Assembly (NCBI RefSeq): GCF_000006765.1
Contig: NC_002516.2
Direction: 5' to 3' (one strand)
DNA length: 64,000 bases
Source of the DNA: Pseudomonas aeruginosa PAO1
GTDB taxonomy: Bacteria; Pseudomonadota; Gammaproteobacteria; Pseudomonadales; Pseudomonadaceae
Below the pieces are notes generated by a model. It did not search any database, had not been told where the DNA came from, and saw only the letters and a list, made by a program, of their open reading frames with translations. The position numbers and the translations under genes were made by a program. Positions 2,902 to 8,885 of the stretch are shown piece by piece (within the stretch, counting starts at the first letter, position 1; every line of letters begins with the position of its first letter).

Positions 2902-4368
2902 TCAGTTCCTCTTGTCCTGGTCGCGGTCGGCCGCTTGCGCGTGGCCGTCGTGCTCTTCGTCGAAACCTTCGCCGGCGGCCGACAACGGCCGTGCCGGCGT
3001 GCGCTTCTGCCCGGCGCCTCCCGGGTTGGTCTCGCGTCCCTCATGGGTGACCGGGCCCTTGCGCACCAGGCGCATCATGTAGCCGATACCGACGCCGAAC
3101 AGCGAGAAGTACACCACCACGAAGGTCAGCAGGGTCAGGCTCATCTGCGTCACGCTCTGCGCCGAGGAGGCGTCGGCGGTGCGCATCAGTCCGTAGACCA
3201 CCCAGGGCTGGCGGCCCATCTCGGTGGTGAACCAGCCGGCGAGGATCGCGATCAGGCCGGACGGTCCCATCAGCAGGGTCAGGCGCAGGAAGGCCTTCGA
3301 GTTGAACAGCTTGTCCTGGCCGCGCCAGCGCAGCCACAGGCTCCAGACGCCGACCAGGATCATCAGCATGCCGAGGCCGGCCATGATCCGGAACGACCAG
3401 AACACCACGGTGGAGTTCGGCCGGTCTTCCGGCGGGAAGTCCTTCAGCGCCGGGATCGGCTCGGTCAGGCTGTGCTTGAGGATCAGGCTGCCGAGCACCG
3501 GGATCTCCACCTTGAAGCGGGTTTCCTCGCGCTGCATGTCCGGCCAGCCGAACAGGATCAGCGGGGTCGGCTCGCCGCTGCTGTTGTCCCAGTGGCCTTC
3601 CATCGCGGCGATCTTCGCCGGCTGGTGCTCCAGGGTATTGAGGCCATGGGCGTCGCCGATCAGCGCCTGTACCGGGGCGACGATCAGCGCCATCCACATG
3701 GCCATCGAGAGCATCTTGCGGATCGCCGGGTTGTCGCGCCCGCGCAGCAGGTGCCAGGCGGCCGAGGCGCCGACGAAGAAGGCGGTGGCGAGGAACGCGG
3801 CGACCGACATGTGCAGCAGGCGGTAGGGGAACGACGGGTTGAAGATCACCGCCAGCCAGTCCACCGGGATCACCCGGCCGTCGACGATCTCGAAACCCTG
3901 CGGGGTCTGCATCCAGCTGTTGGAAGCGAGGATCCAGAACGTCGAGATCAGCGTGCCGATCGCCACCATCACCGTGGCGAAGAAATGCAGGCCCGGTCCC
4001 ACGCGGTTCCAGCCGAACAGCATGACCCCGAGGAAACCGGCCTCGAGGAAGAACGCGGTGAGCACCTCGTAGGTCAGCAGCGGACCGGTGATGGACCCGG
4101 CGAAGTCGGAGAAATGGCTCCAGTTGGTGCCGAACTGGTACGCCATGACCAGCCCGGACACCACGCCCATGCCGAAGTTGACCGCGAAAATCTTCGACCA
4201 GAAATGATAGAGGTCGCGGTAGACCTCTTCGTTCGTTTTCAGCCAGAGGCCTTCCAGTACGGCCAGGTAGCTGGCCAACCCGATGGTGATCGCCGGGAAG
4301 ATGATGTGGAAGGACACGGTGAACGCGAACTGGATGCGGGCAAGGTCGATAGCCTCCAATCCGAACAT
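2902..4368 (-). CDS. cioA: Cyanide-insensitive (bd-type) quinol oxidase subunit I
   Basis: LARIQFAFTVSFHIIFP, QPAKIAAMEG and GWFTTEMGRQPW are CydA motifs. Confidence 0.97.
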   Translation of the reverse strand: MFGLEAIDLARIQFAFTVSFHIIFPAITIGLASYLAVLEGLWLKTNEEVYRDLYHFWSKIFAVNFGMGVVSGLVMAYQFGTNWSHFSDFAGSITGPLLTYEVLTAFFLEAGFLGVMLFGWNRVGPGLHFFATVMVAIGTLISTFWILASNSWMQTPQGFEIVDGRVIPVDWLAVIFNPSFPYRLLHMSVAAFLATAFFVGASAAWHLLRGRDNPAIRKMLSMAMWMALIVAPVQALIGDAHGLNTLEHQPAKIAAMEGHWDNSSGEPTPLILFGWPDMQREETRFKVEIPVLGSLILKHSLTEPIPALKDFPPEDRPNSTVVFWSFRIMAGLGMLMILVGVWSLWLRWRGQDKLFNSKAFLRLTLLMGPSGLIAILAGWFTTEMGRQPWVVYGLMRTADASSAQSVTQMSLTLLTFVVVYFSLFGVGIGYMMRLVRKGPVTHEGRETNPGGAGQKRTPARPLSAAGEGFDEEHDGHAQAADRDQDKRN

Positions 4369-4557
4369 GGCAACTCCTCTTCAGGTTCTCGGCCCTTCCG
4401 GCTTACGTGCGGATTCGGCCGTGCTTCCTCACGCGCAACGCTACGCAAGGTTTTGGAACACATCCTTCAGCTATCGTTCTTGTCATTGGAAAGCGACCGC
4501 AGCCCTGGATGGCAGGAATGCGGGAAGGGTCGCAAGCAGATTCCCGGACCGCCCGCC

Positions 4558-4571
4558 TTGATGCAGAGCAA
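4558..4571. promoter_or_regulatory. Putative ANR/FNR box upstream of cioA
   Basis: TTGAT-GCAG-AGCAA, one mismatch to TTGAT-N4-ATCAA. Confidence 0.5.
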
Positions 4572-4744
4572 TTCGGTACGAAAATCTTACCCGTTAGCCT
4601 AGACCGTCCTGCTGTGGTCGGTTGTCGCGAGACAAATTGCCTCAGCTCTCTCATATTCATTAATAGAATATAAAAATAAACAAATAATATTTTTATGGAA
4701 TAAAAAGAGTCGCTACTCTCCCCTTCAAGCCGCCCCTCGCGTGT

Positions 4745-4760
4745 TGGCGCCCCTCCTTCA
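4745..4760 (+). promoter_or_regulatory. Putative non-canonical sigma54 (-24/-12) promoter
   Basis: TGGCGC-CCCT-CCTTCA: GG-N10-TC instead of GG-N10-GC, 45 nt before the CDS. Same form as at 32096. Confidence 0.5.
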
Positions 4761-4805
4761 CCGCCCTGCGCGCAGCGGCGGACATCGCCCTACAAGGATC
4801 GAAGA

Positions 4806-5585
4806 ATGAAAAAACTGCTCCTGCTGACTGCCCTGGCCTCCGTCATCAGCGTTTCCGCCAGCGCCGCGGAAAAGCTCATCGTCGCCGCCACGCCGATCCC
4901 CCATGCGGAAATCCTCGAACTCATCAAGCCGACCCTGGCGAAGGAAGGCGTCGACCTGCAGATCAAGGTGTTCACCGACTACGTGCAGCCCAACGTGCAG
5001 GTCGCCGAGAAGCGCCTGGACGCCAACTACTTCCAGACCCTGCCGTACCTGGAGAACTTCAACAAAGGCAAGGGCACCAACCTGGTCACCGTGGTCGGCG
5101 TACACGTCGAGCCCTTCGGTGGTTATTCGAGGAAATACAAGTCGCTGGCCGAGTTGCCCGACGGCGCCACCGTCGCCATTCCCAACGAAGGCAGCAACAG
5201 CGGGCGCGCCCTGCTGCTGTTGCAGAAGGCCGGCCTGCTCAAGTTGAAGGATCCGAACAACGCCCTGGCCACGCCCAAGGACATCGCCGAGAACCCGAAG
5301 AACCTGAAATTCAAGGAACTCGAATCGGCCCTGCTGCCGCGCGTGCTGGACCAGGTCGACCTGGACCTGATCAACACCAACTACGCGCTGGAGGCCAAGC
5401 TCAACCCGGCCAAGGACGCGCTGGTCCTGGAAGACCGCGACTCGCCCTATGTGAACTACCTGGTGGCGCGTCCGGACAACAAGGACAGCGACGCCCTGAA
5501 GAAGCTTTCCGCCGCGCTGACCAGCCCGGAAGTGAAAGCCTTCATCGAGAAGAAATATGCCGGCGCGGTGGTCCCGGCCTTCTGA
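4806..5585 (+). CDS. MetQ/NlpA-family ABC substrate-binding protein (methionine/organosulfur type)
   Basis: VFTDYVQPN, ANYFQTLPYL, VAIPNEGSNSGRALLLL, INTNYAL; signal peptide with no lipobox Cys. Confidence 0.92.
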   Translation: MKKLLLLTALASVISVSASAAEKLIVAATPIPHAEILELIKPTLAKEGVDLQIKVFTDYVQPNVQVAEKRLDANYFQTLPYLENFNKGKGTNLVTVVGVHVEPFGGYSRKYKSLAELPDGATVAIPNEGSNSGRALLLLQKAGLLKLKDPNNALATPKDIAENPKNLKFKELESALLPRVLDQVDLDLINTNYALEAKLNPAKDALVLEDRDSPYVNYLVARPDNKDSDALKKLSAALTSPEVKAFIEKKYAGAVVPAF

Positions 5586-5637
5586 CCCCAGCCCGTCCCG
5601 ACTCCCACGCTGGGCGCCGTTGCAGCGCCCCTTGTTC

Positions 5638-5675
5638 ACGCCGGTGTCGCATGGCTTGCACCGGCGTTTCTTTTT
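5638..5675 (+). terminator. Intrinsic terminator after the MetQ-like gene
   Basis: 9-bp stem ACGCCGGTG/CACCGGCGT followed by TTCTTTTT. Confidence 0.7.
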
Positions 5676-5759
5676 CCGCAACGGCCCCCGCCCGCAGCCG
5701 TTCCGGCCGTCGTCGCGGCGCAGGCGCTGGAGGCGCCCCGTGCCGCCAAGGAGTTACCC

Positions 5760-6734
5760 ATGAGCGAGAAACCACGCCCCGCGCCGCTGACCTTCCCCGA
5801 CGCCGACCGCAGTCCGCTGAGCATCCGCGCCAAGGCCCTGGTGTTCTTCGACCCACGCTCGCACCGGGTCCGCGAAGAACTCGAGCGCCTCGCGCCACAG
5901 GGCCAGCCGGTGCTGATCGAAGGCGAGACCGGCACCGGCAAGGAGTTGCTCGCCCGGCAGATCCACCGCCACAGCGAACGCGCCGGTCTGTTCGTCGCGG
6001 TCAGTTGCAGCGCCCTCAGTCGCAACCACGCCGAAGCCGAGCTGTTCGGCTATGCCCCCGGTACCCACAACGGCCCGGTCGGCAGCCGCGCCGGCTGGTT
6101 CGGTTCGGCCAATGGCGGCACCCTGTACCTGGACGAGATCGCCGACCTGCCGCTGACGCTGCAGGCCAGGCTGCTACAGACGCTGGAGGAACGCGAGGTG
6201 CTGCGGGTCGGCGCGCAGCAGCCGATTCCCCATGACGTGCGCCTGGTCACCGCCACCAGCGTCGACCTGGACCAGGCGGTGCGCGCCGGCAAGTTCCTGG
6301 CCGGCCTGCAACAATACCTGCACGACGGCCGCCTGAGCCTGCCGCCATTGCGCGAACGTCCGGGAGACATCCTGCCGCTGGCGGAATACTTCATCGGCGT
6401 CTATGCCCAGCGCCTGGACCTGCCGGTGCCGGCCATCGGCGTGGAAACCCAGCGGGTCCTCGAGAGCTATCCCTGGCCAGGCAACATCCGCGAGCTGGAA
6501 AACGTCGTCCACTTCGCCCTGCTGGTCAGCGACAAGGAAGAAATCCTGCCGCAGCATCTGAATTTTGGCGGAACAACGCCAGACCCATCGCTGGCCGGTC
6601 TGCGGCGCCTGCTCGGCCAAGCCGGAGCGCCGTCGCTGGAGCAGGTACAGGCCCTGCTCCTGCAACTGGCCACCGAGCAGGCAGGCGGCGACGAGGAGGC
6701 GGGAAGGCGGCGCCTGGGACTGGCGGCGAACTGA
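5760..6734 (+). CDS. Sigma54-interaction-domain (bEBP-like) regulator with degenerate motifs
   Basis: Walker A GETGTGKE, Walker B LYLDEI and WPGNIRELEN are present. The GAFTGA position reads GTHNGP. No N-terminal sensor domain. Confidence 0.88.
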   Translation: MSEKPRPAPLTFPDADRSPLSIRAKALVFFDPRSHRVREELERLAPQGQPVLIEGETGTGKELLARQIHRHSERAGLFVAVSCSALSRNHAEAELFGYAPGTHNGPVGSRAGWFGSANGGTLYLDEIADLPLTLQARLLQTLEEREVLRVGAQQPIPHDVRLVTATSVDLDQAVRAGKFLAGLQQYLHDGRLSLPPLRERPGDILPLAEYFIGVYAQRLDLPVPAIGVETQRVLESYPWPGNIRELENVVHFALLVSDKEEILPQHLNFGGTTPDPSLAGLRRLLGQAGAPSLEQVQALLLQLATEQAGGDEEAGRRRLGLAAN

Positions 6735-6822
6735 AGGAATCCTTCGGCGAACGTGCGGGAAAAGCGCGGCGCCGAAGGCTTCCATACGTCCGAAGGATTG
6801 GCTCCCGGGCCCTTGATCGTGT

Positions 6823-6844
6823 TTATATTGAACGCTTGATCAAA
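6823..6844. promoter_or_regulatory. BetI operator upstream of betT3
   Basis: TTATATTGAACG-CTTG-ATCAAA closely matches the recalled E. coli BetI operator TTATATTGAACG-TCCA-ATCAAT and precedes a choline BCCT gene. Confidence 0.7.
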
Positions 6845-6923
6845 TTAAGGACGAGGAGACCAGCCTGTTTTGACTGACGCACAATCGCCCTCCGCCACCC
6901 CCTCCACCCCCACGCCCATCCGC

Positions 6924-8885
6924 ATGAATCCCCCGGTGTTCTACGGTGCGGCGATCCTGATCCTGCTGTTCGCCGCAGTGGTCATCGGCTTCCCCCAGCG
7001 CGCCGGCGAATGGCTGCTGGCCGCGCAGACCTGGGCCTCGCAGACCGTCGGCTGGTACTACCTGCTGGCGATGACGCTGTACCTGATCTTCGTGGTGGTC
7101 ACCGCGCTTTCCGGCTACGGCAAGATCAAGCTCGGTGCCGACCACGACGAGCCGGAATTCAGCTACCTGTCCTGGGCCGGCATGCTGTTCGCCGCCGGCA
7201 TCAGCATCACCCTGTTCTTCTTCTGCGTATCCGAACCGCTGACCCACTTCCTCCAGCCGCCGCAAGGCGAGGCCGGTACCCAGGAAGCCGCGCGGCAGGC
7301 CATGGAACTGCTGTTCCTGCACTGGGGCCTGCACGGCTGGGGCGTATTCGCCCTGGTGGCGATGGCGCTGGCCTACTTCGCCTACCGCCACAACCTGCCG
7401 CTGGCCCTGCGCTCGGCGCTCTACCCGTTGATCGGCAAGCGCATCAACGGGCCGATCGGCTACACGGTGGACTGCTTCGGCATCATCGCCACGGTGTTCG
7501 GCCTCGGCGCCGACATGGGCTTCGGCGTGCTCCAGCTCAACTCCGGGCTGGACTACCTGTACGCCATCCCGCATACCCACCCGGTGCAGATGGCGCTCAT
7601 CGTGTTGATGATGGGCGCGGCGATCTCGGTGGCGGTCTCCGGGGTCGACAAGGGCATCCGCATCCTCTCCGACATCAACATGCTGCTGGCCTGCAGCCTG
7701 CTGCTGTTCGTGCTGTTCGCCGGTCCGACCCAGCACCTGCTCAACACCCTGGTGCAGAACGTCGGCGACTACCTCGGCCACCTGCCGGGCAAGAGCTTCG
7801 ACCTCTACGCCTACGGCGGCCCCAGCGACTGGCTGGGCTCGTGGACGGTGTTCTACTGGGCCTGGTGGATCGCCTGGGCGCCCTTCGTCGGCCTGTTCAT
7901 CGCGCGCATCTCGCGCGGCCGGACGATCCGCGAATTCGTCTTCGGCGTGCTGTTCATCCCGCTCGGCTTCACCCTGGCGTGGATGTCGATCTTCGGCAAC
8001 AGCGCCCTGGAGCAGGCCCTCGGCGGCGCCAGCGAACTCGGCCGGGTGGCCATCGAGCAGCCGTCGATGGCCCTCTACCAGATGCTTCAGAACTACCCTT
8101 GGAGCCGCGCGGTGATCACCGTCACGGTGCTGGTCAGCTTCGTCTTCTTCGTCACCTCGGCGGACTCCGGCACCGTGGTCCTCTCCACCCTCTCCGCCCA
8201 CGGCGGCAGCGCCGACGACGACGGGCCGAAGTGGCTGCGGGTGTTCTGGGGCTCGGTCACCGCGCTGGTCACCGGCGGGCTGCTGTTCGCCGGCAGCATC
8301 GACGCGCTGAAGTCGGCGGTGGTGCTGACCTCCCTGCCCTTCTCGCTGATCCTGCTATTGATGATGTGGGGCCTGCACAAGGCCTTCTACATGGAGTCGC
8401 AGCGCCAGCGGGCGCGGAGCCACTCCCTGGCGCCGCTGATGAGCGGCAACGGCAAGCGCTCCGGCGGCTGGAAGCGACGCCTGTCGCAGGCCGTGCACTT
8501 CCCCTCGCGGGACGAGGTGTACCGCTTCATGAACGACGTGGTGCGCCCGGCGATCAGCGAGGTTTCCGAGGTGTTCCGCGAGAAGGGCCTGGCGGTGGAC
8601 GCCCAGCTCGACCCGGGCAACGCCTCGCTGAGCCTGGAGATCGGTCATGGCGAGCAGCATCGGTTCCTCTACCAGGTGCTGATGCGCGGCTACTTCACGC
8701 CGTCCTTCGCGCGTGCCGGCATGGGCGGCCTGCACCTGAAGAACCGCCGCTACTTCCGTGCCGAGGTGCATCTCGCCGAAGGTAGCCAGGACTACGATCT
8801 GATGGGCTACACCAAGGAGCAGATCATCAACGACATGCTCGACCAGTACGAGCGGCACCTCCAGTTCCTGCACCTGGTGCGTTGA
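6924..8885 (+). CDS. betT3: BCCT-family choline transporter
   Basis: SWAGMLFAAG, LFLHWGLHGW and WTVFYWAWWIAWAPFVGLFIARISRGRT motifs; long C-terminal cytoplasmic domain. Confidence 0.92.
   Translation: MNPPVFYGAAILILLFAAVVIGFPQRAGEWLLAAQTWASQTVGWYYLLAMTLYLIFVVVTALSGYGKIKLGADHDEPEFSYLSWAGMLFAAGISITLFFFCVSEPLTHFLQPPQGEAGTQEAARQAMELLFLHWGLHGWGVFALVAMALAYFAYRHNLPLALRSALYPLIGKRINGPIGYTVDCFGIIATVFGLGADMGFGVLQLNSGLDYLYAIPHTHPVQMALIVLMMGAAISVAVSGVDKGIRILSDINMLLACSLLLFVLFAGPTQHLLNTLVQNVGDYLGHLPGKSFDLYAYGGPSDWLGSWTVFYWAWWIAWAPFVGLFIARISRGRTIREFVFGVLFIPLGFTLAWMSIFGNSALEQALGGASELGRVAIEQPSMALYQMLQNYPWSRAVITVTVLVSFVFFVTSADSGTVVLSTLSAHGGSADDDGPKWLRVFWGSVTALVTGGLLFAGSIDALKSAVVLTSLPFSLILLLMMWGLHKAFYMESQRQRARSHSLAPLMSGNGKRSGGWKRRLSQAVHFPSRDEVYRFMNDVVRPAISEVSEVFREKGLAVDAQLDPGNASLSLEIGHGEQHRFLYQVLMRGYFTPSFARAGMGGLHLKNRRYFRAEVHLAEGSQDYDLMGYTKEQIINDMLDQYERHLQFLHLVR

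Follow-up and report, generated by a model that had tools for sequence, protein, structure and literature searches.

Bacterial enhancer-binding proteins (bEBPs) are textbook AAA+ motors, and the known relatives that depart from the canonical layout do so by lacking one element each, either the DNA-binding domain or the GAFTGA motif. FleT of Rhodobacter sphaeroides, FlgR of Helicobacter, and CtcC of Chlamydia have no DNA-binding domain and act from solution or in mixed rings, and hetero-oligomeric assembly has precedents in FleQ/FleT and HrpR/HrpS. Engineered L1-loop or arginine-finger (R-finger) mutants of PspF, used in subunit mixing, bind nucleotide and cannot contact sigma54 or stimulate hydrolysis by a neighboring subunit. 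TyrR/PhhR, VpsR, and Caulobacter NtrC are GAFTGA-less relatives that work with sigma70. To our knowledge, every characterized bEBP relative keeps the sigma54-contact loop or the DNA-binding domain, and the literature that we searched describes no natural, conserved bEBP derivative in which L1 motif, arginine fingers, and DNA-binding domain are all missing. Here, we analyze a gene at positions 5760–6734 of a 64,000-nucleotide window of Pseudomonas aeruginosa PAO1, the whole stretch of DNA under study, to which all unprefixed coordinates refer. Our best explanation, held with slightly less than even confidence, is that its product, a pseudo-enhancer-binding protein (pseudo-EBP), is a conserved, nucleotide-binding, non-activating derivative of the regulator SfnR that acts by contacting other proteins in the scavenging of sulfur, methionine, and cysteine, with a core function that does not depend on SfnR.

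The open reading frame (ORF) matches the Pfam families Sigma54_activat (PF00158, 1e-48, residues 31–187) and AAA_lid_14 (4e-20), and its product aligns with the solved AAA+ domain of FlrC with an E value of 1e-54. Many NCBIfam bEBP equivalogs match its central part only, each far under the curated cut-off. Motif states were called by alignment to the solved AAA+ domains of FlrC, NtrC1, and PspF and to 22 other bEBP paralogs of G001, the genome nearest to the window (95% shared words), which served for paralog comparison. Column conservation was taken from an alignment of 81 distinct orthologs.

5760..6734, + strand: pseudo-EBP gene; ORF with ATG start, 324 codons (324 amino acids), AAA+ domain of sigma54-activator type plus lid
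5784..5861, + strand: N-terminal SfnR-type motif, residues 9–34, PLTFPDADRSPLSIRAKALVFFDPRS; best conserved stretch of the pseudo-EBP family
5922..5945, + strand: Walker A, GETGTGKE, intact; conservation 0.97
6060..6077, + strand: L1 loop, GTHNGP in place of GAFTGA
6123..6140, + strand: Walker B, LYLDEI, intact; conservation 1.00, invariant
6294..6320, + strand: arginine-finger helix, FLAGLQQYL in place of FRxDLYYRL
6480..6500, + strand: sensor II, GNIRELE, intact; conservation 0.94
6546..6731, + strand: variable C-terminal tail, residues 263–324, helix-turn-helix (HTH) absent; conservation 0.54

Judging from the intact Walker A, Walker B, and sensor II motifs, the protein very probably binds nucleotide. 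Because its finger helix reads FLAGLQQYL where bEBPs have FREDLYYRL, both finger arginines are gone. As read from its predicted sequence, a protein with no sigma54-contact loop, no trans-acting arginines, and no recognizable DNA-binding domain cannot be a sigma54 activator. An earlier note on this stretch had named the product a pseudo-EBP, citing these same retained and degenerate motifs, and the alignments bear it out; they likewise agree with its remark that a sensor domain is absent, since just ~35 residues stand ahead of the AAA+ core. Among the 23 bEBP-domain genes of G001, the triple loss of GAFTGA, the R-finger arginines, and the C-terminal HTH occurs in the pseudo-EBP only; the PhhR-like paralog in this genome has GAFEGA.

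Like FleT, FlgR, CtcC, and HrpR/HrpS, the pseudo-EBP is an AAA+ activator module without an enhancer-binding domain of its own, but those are true activators, with GAFTGA and the arginine fingers in place. With TyrR/PhhR, VpsR, and Caulobacter NtrC it shares a bEBP-type AAA+ domain devoid of the sigma54-contact motif; these, however, retain their DNA-binding domain, the FRxDLYxRL helix, and DNA-bound regulation, whereas the pseudo-EBP has no HTH. The PspF lesions are laboratory mutations, whereas lesions of the same classes in the pseudo-EBP are natural, ancient, fixed, and under selection.

The last ~20 residues of the C-terminal tail are found in the aeruginosa lineage only, and other orthologs end 15–40 residues sooner. 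No Pfam match to HTH_8 or to any other HTH was detected in the tail, even at E ≤ 10, and BLASTP found no similarity between it and the C terminus of SfnR (E 3.8). An exploratory translation that took the TGA stop for a residue gave no HTH either, and it is not meant to imply an alternative code for PAO1. The earlier note had described a Fis-type HTH that halts at GGDEEAGRRRLGLAAN. That there is no HTH holds, but the segment was rejected as the first half of such a domain, as the comparison gives it no statistical support (E 3.8), no HTH family of Pfam matches it, and it is confined to the aeruginosa lineage. It is safer to say that, by comparison of the predicted proteins, the entire ~100-residue C-terminal region of SfnR, HTH included, is gone. 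One of the 23 paralogs, L006 (G001:C1:3694389-3697892), has in a stop-to-stop reading an Arg/Ser/Cys-rich tail without the usual HTH, possibly through a frameshift or a wrong reading.

The gene is widely and carefully kept. In a family sample of 251 Pseudomonadaceae genomes, each at least 95% complete, it is present in 124, spread over 12 of 21 genera and nearly always in single copy, and it was found in all 34 species of the Genome Taxonomy Database (GTDB) genus of P. aeruginosa (hereafter, the genus). Proteins of P. aeruginosa are 98–99% identical to the query, and orthologs of 270–325 amino acids with 60–83% identity occur throughout Pseudomonas and its allies. In one genome there is a second copy (L173, G117:C1:2471069-2471866; 67% identity to the query), which has no serine hydrolase gene of the kind described below beside it.

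The ratio of nonsynonymous to synonymous substitution rates (dN/dS, NG86 method) of the PAO1 gene against 35 orthologs is 0.15–0.37. Within the genus, the values are 0.055 for the L1-loop segment and 0.04 for the R-finger segment, 0.23 for the AAA+ core, and 0.36 for the C-terminal tail. At the position of the GAFTGA Phe, the 81 orthologs most commonly have His (56) or Tyr (14), and at that of the Thr, Asn (39) or Ser (18); Phe and Thr themselves do not figure in the lists of the six commonest residues at these positions. Nor does Arg figure in the corresponding list for the first finger, and all 81 orthologs have Tyr where the second would be. Since the L1 and R-finger segments are the most constrained, the Tyr is universal, and Walker B is invariant, the altered motifs appear to be fixed and functional in some new way. 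The earlier note had proposed asking of the orthologs whether the degenerate motifs are under purifying selection; the values for these two segments answer that they are and contradict neutral decay. The three missing functional elements would suit a decaying remnant or a misannotated pseudogene without function, but this is barely credible for a gene whose frame is intact in every genome examined, whose dN/dS is well under 1 and lowest in the very motifs that were altered, and in which an R-finger position is fixed as Tyr. Rather, because the activating, DNA-contacting, and ATPase-firing parts are lost and the disabled motor is nevertheless kept under strong purifying selection, the fold seems to have been recruited for another job, presumably a different regulatory one.

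The N-terminal motif is a further conserved surface, with a mean column conservation of 0.92 against 0.81 for the AAA+ core. An AlphaFold2 monomer prediction from a 22-row alignment gave a moderate AAA+ model with a predicted local distance difference test (pLDDT) score of 67, in which residues 1–34 score below 30, so that the motif is predicted to be disordered. Being the most conserved stretch and yet of such low pLDDT, it has the hallmarks of a peptide that becomes ordered upon contact with a partner or a neighboring subunit.

The closest relatives of the pseudo-EBP are of SfnR type. SfnR, which depends on sigma54 and is controlled by CysB, activates dimethylsulfone and methanesulfonate genes in Pseudomonas; P. 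aeruginosa has two versions, SfnR1 and SfnR2. A maximum-likelihood tree of the 23 bEBP paralogs of G001 places the pseudo-EBP within the clade of L005 and L009, two regulators of ~365–375 amino acids (support 100/99), as sister to L009 (96/81) and on a branch of 1.21 substitutions per site. Over the AAA+ core, it is 51–55% identical to these two, compared with ~40% to all other paralogs. L005 and L009 flank msuE (flavin mononucleotide reductase) and an alkanesulfonate monooxygenase gene, both above the cut-off, and an SfnB/DszC-family oxidoreductase gene, and these surroundings identify them as SfnR-type. In addition, the N-terminal motif, LLTxP...SIRA[KT]A.VF.DP.S, is common to the pseudo-EBP and to full-length SfnR-type proteins. 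The latter, seen in Burkholderiales, Methylococcales, Cellvibrionaceae, and other groups, still have GAFTGA and FRxDLYYRL and carry an HTH of the form NQV.TA.LLG[IL]SRN at the C terminus. Tree placement, identity, and shared motif together point to a truncated and remodeled SfnR paralog, and the connection with SfnR drawn in the earlier note is thus correct as to origin.

Both proteins have the same domain start, no sensor domain, the N-terminal motif, and a sulfur-related genomic setting. Unlike SfnR, the pseudo-EBP is without GAFTGA, both arginine fingers, and the ~100-residue C-terminal HTH region; it does not lie beside sfn or msu genes, its neighbors being genes for a MetQ-like protein and a BCCT transporter, and it persists in genomes that have no SfnR. 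In two SfnR loci of P. putida type (L049 and L050, ~7075–7843 in each), a MetQ-like paralog with ~61% identity to the window's MetQ-like protein lies ~1 kb downstream of SfnR on the opposite strand; on the evidence of these loci, a MetQ-type gene recurs beside both SfnR and its degenerate paralog.

Descent from SfnR raises the possibility that SfnR is also the partner of the pseudo-EBP. The distribution of the two genes in the family sample indicates that it need not be, as at least 47 of the 124 carriers are without an SfnR-type gene. Tallies by genus are as follows.

Genus g1: pseudo-EBP in 32 and SfnR-type gene in 28 of 32 genomes sampled
Genus g14: pseudo-EBP in 42 and SfnR-type gene in 18 of 48 genomes sampled
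Genus g6: pseudo-EBP in 8 and SfnR-type gene in 3 of 9 genomes sampled
Genus g4: pseudo-EBP in 2 and SfnR-type gene in 0 of 2 genomes sampled
Genus g17: pseudo-EBP in 5 and SfnR-type gene in 1 of 47 genomes sampled
Genus g18: pseudo-EBP in 0 and SfnR-type gene in 12 of 15 genomes sampled

Four species of the genus (G006, G015, G017, and G018, of which G006 and G018 are single-contig assemblies) likewise have the pseudo-EBP and no SfnR-type gene; there, an SfnR query finds nothing better than the pseudo-EBP or generic bEBPs at 46–47%. Strict co-occurrence with a partner bEBP, as for FleT or HrpR/HrpS, is therefore not seen with SfnR, and the share of SfnR-free carriers makes an obligate role as partner or anti-activator of SfnR unlikely, as a protein that solely poisoned or assisted SfnR rings would be expected to be lost along with SfnR. 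Pairwise dN/dS values are 0.20–0.33 for three SfnR-free species, against a median of 0.04 in a densely sampled SfnR-containing clade, a comparison that is confounded by depth of divergence. Relaxed selection in SfnR-free lineages was considered on this basis and not concluded, as P. aeruginosa has SfnR and yet gives 0.2–0.25 against all others.

The earlier note had cast the protein as a dominant-negative subunit or cofactor for SfnR-type activators. In this form, the pseudo-EBP would join mixed AAA+ rings with SfnR1 or SfnR2 and lower or shape their output as feedback in sulfate starvation. SfnR is its closest paralog and shares its N-terminal motif, genomes of P. aeruginosa type have two SfnR paralogs, and the pseudo-EBP gene is coregulated with sulfur genes; moreover, arginine fingers work in trans, so that a finger-less subunit would disable the site of the subunit adjoining it. 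However, in SfnR-free carriers, conspicuous in genus g14 and in the two complete single-contig genomes above, the gene is still intact and constrained. A protein without a DNA-binding domain would not concentrate at enhancers, and the long branch leading to the pseudo-EBP makes compatibility at the ring interface doubtful. No conserved sigma54 −24/−12 promoter was found near the ORF, upstream of the metQ-like gene, or upstream of the 24 serine hydrolase operons described below, and the steadiest neighbor outside the genus is that hydrolase gene rather than a sulfur regulator. We consider the ring-poisoning role unlikely, although the pseudo-EBP may facultatively influence SfnR rings in P. aeruginosa, with its two SfnR paralogs.

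A broader form of the same idea is that the pseudo-EBP modulates other bEBPs or sigma54 in general, by joining the rings of unrelated activators or by occupying sigma54-RNA polymerase nonproductively. Every genome that carries the gene has about 20 other bEBPs, and the AAA+ core is ~40% identical to theirs. But the 81 orthologs have lost the L1 residues that contact sigma54, the hetero-oligomeric bEBPs on record are coevolved pairs, and nothing in the gene context of the pseudo-EBP points to another bEBP, which together make such a role improbable.

The gene neighborhoods suggest a setting of another kind. In the window, the order is cioA (−), MetQ/NlpA lipoprotein gene (+), pseudo-EBP gene (+), BCCT transporter gene (+), and OPT transporter gene (−). 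Across the genus, cioBA (−) and a metQ-like gene precede the pseudo-EBP gene in 30 of 30 loci, and the BCCT gene lies downstream in 28. Most species of the genus have in addition a gene for a 396-residue pyridoxal phosphate (PLP) enzyme of Cys/Met metabolism between the metQ-like and pseudo-EBP genes, abutting the start of the latter (compare L141:4002-5192). This gene was cleanly lost in the aeruginosa lineage, leaving a 174-nucleotide spacer (5586–5759) in which a terminator-like hairpin is present but no trace of the PLP enzyme gene was found.

Outside the genus, all 24 loci (L154–L172 and L031–L035) have, directly upstream and in the same orientation, a gene for a serine hydrolase of YdeN/RBBP9 type (PF06821), with gaps of 10–202 nucleotides. 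These loci come from many genera, and the outer flanks of the gene pairs differ and are unrelated. In the fluorescens/putida-type order, genes for a TonB-dependent receptor, tonB, exbB, exbD, the hydrolase, the pseudo-EBP, and the metQ-like protein follow one another. The hydrolase has 193 amino acids, a mean identity of 77%, and an intact Ser-Asp-His triad. No such gene neighbors the full-length SfnR loci, and none was found anywhere in the window. A literature search on this hydrolase family returned nothing useful, and the enzyme seems to be uncharacterized in bacteria.

As the order cioA (−), PA3931, PA3932 agrees with the published gene neighborhood, the ORF is probably PA3932 and the gene upstream of it probably PA3931. 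In the published work, cioA and PA3931 are divergent neighbors, and a published transcriptome lists PA3931 as a putative methionine-binding protein and the next gene, PA3932, as a "transcriptional regulator". In the transcriptome of a ΔPA2504 mutant, PA3932 and PA3931 are down together with about 30 sulfur-assimilation genes, and an expression table reports PA3932 as up during infection. In the literature searched, we found PA3932 in expression tables alone and no functional study of it.

The following features surround the pseudo-EBP gene.

4806..5585, + strand: MetQ/NlpA-family lipoprotein gene, probably PA3931; Pfam Lipoprotein_9 (1e-103), NCBIfam MetQ/NlpA
5638..5678, + strand: terminator-like hairpin from RNA folding, with a 10-bp stem followed by UUUCUUUUU, in the spacer between the metQ-like gene and the ORF
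6736..6783, + strand: long imperfect hairpin right after the stop codon; fold of −42 kcal/mol for a 106-nucleotide stretch, z −2.3 against shuffles, no U-run

The earlier note had placed the ORF behind a leaky terminator downstream of a sulfur-starvation binding-protein gene. A MetQ/NlpA-family lipoprotein gene does lie upstream, its sulfur link coming from the one published transcriptome, and a hairpin with a U-run is present 3′ of it, but a consensus terminator scan did not call this hairpin. RNA-library contigs span 4400–6900, possibly with DNA included, and take in genes on both strands; raw reads give a depth of 0–5×. In two RNA sequencing runs, contigs end at ~6902–6932, between the pseudo-EBP and BCCT genes. 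The divergent intergenic region between cioA and the metQ-like gene holds a strongly AT-rich island (4640–4710) in an otherwise GC-rich region, and this island gives the sole sigma70-like promoter match in 4300–7000. A conserved Anr box has been described in the cioA/PA3931 intergenic region (PMC6588701).

From these data, a plausible history for a conserved SfnR derivative is that SfnR was duplicated in an ancestor of the Pseudomonadaceae and that one copy then shed the GAFTGA loop, both arginine fingers, and the DNA-binding region at its C terminus. What it kept is the pocket for nucleotide, formed by Walker A, Walker B, and sensor II, together with the lid and the SfnR-specific N-terminal peptide. 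Such a protein would bind ATP and hydrolyze it poorly; poor hydrolysis would follow from the lack of arginine fingers, so that the protein would serve in nucleotide-gated binding and not as a motor. It would neither activate sigma54 nor bind DNA, and its output would be protein-protein contact through three strictly conserved surfaces, namely the N-terminal peptide, the remodeled L1 loop, and the remodeled R-finger helix. Operon partners would link it to the scavenging of organosulfur compounds, methionine, and cysteine, with the MetQ-like lipoprotein and the Cys/Met PLP enzyme in the genus and, elsewhere, with the YdeN-type hydrolase next to tonB-exbBD. Where SfnR exists, the protein may also intercalate into SfnR rings. 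More tentatively, and with a real but clearly smaller chance of being right, the pseudo-EBP could represent a new class of bEBP-derived pseudo-ATPase, a sigma54- and DNA-independent, nucleotide-gated adaptor born from SfnR, conserved across the Pseudomonadaceae, and working with the YdeN/RBBP9-type hydrolase and sulfur-scavenging proteins via its N-terminal peptide and its remodeled L1/R-finger face.

Several points weigh against a nucleotide-gated SfnR derivative acting by contact in sulfur metabolism. ATP binding, the lack of hydrolysis, and the oligomeric state are predicted properties, and the sulfur link is contextual, coming from gene context and one transcriptome table. At query position 182, two residues past the lost first finger (F-x-E-R-L), 41 of 81 orthologs have an Arg, which could conceivably serve as a substitute finger where it is present; it is absent from the aeruginosa clade, the PAO1 protein included. 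The hydrolase is far more widespread than the pseudo-EBP, occurring in 198 of the 251 genomes and in genera without pseudo-EBP, and in G001 the two genes are unlinked (~0.23 Mb and ~1.08 Mb, ~850 kb apart). Their adjacency elsewhere may on both counts reflect only a shared promoter. A predicted complex of hydrolase and pseudo-EBP (the L033 pair, with paired 24-row alignments) scored 0.00, which is evidence neither way.

The same observations bear on a further alternative, namely that the pseudo-EBP works chiefly with the hydrolase, for instance by regulating it in a nucleotide-dependent manner or by serving as its scaffold, in a two-gene module that was later split in the P. aeruginosa genus. 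The 24 co-oriented pairs with their short gaps and unrelated outer flanks argue for it, as do the intact triad and high conservation of the hydrolase and the genus tallies, in which no genus that carries the pseudo-EBP has fewer genomes with the hydrolase than with the pseudo-EBP. The many genera that have the hydrolase without the pseudo-EBP and the distance between the genes in the genome nearest to the window argue against it; the complex prediction is neutral. We regard this module as quite unlikely.

The pseudo-EBP is a natural and ancient bEBP with what appears to be a disabled motor, kept in a major family that includes P. aeruginosa, and it offers a tractable case of pseudo-enzyme evolution within the transcription machinery. 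Hundreds of orthologs are labeled "sigma-54 interacting transcriptional regulator" (or "SfnR") in databases, a name that the anatomy of the pseudo-EBP corrects. For the biology of P. aeruginosa and its relatives, it would add an unstudied player to the sulfate-starvation response, together with a conserved link to an uncharacterized serine hydrolase.

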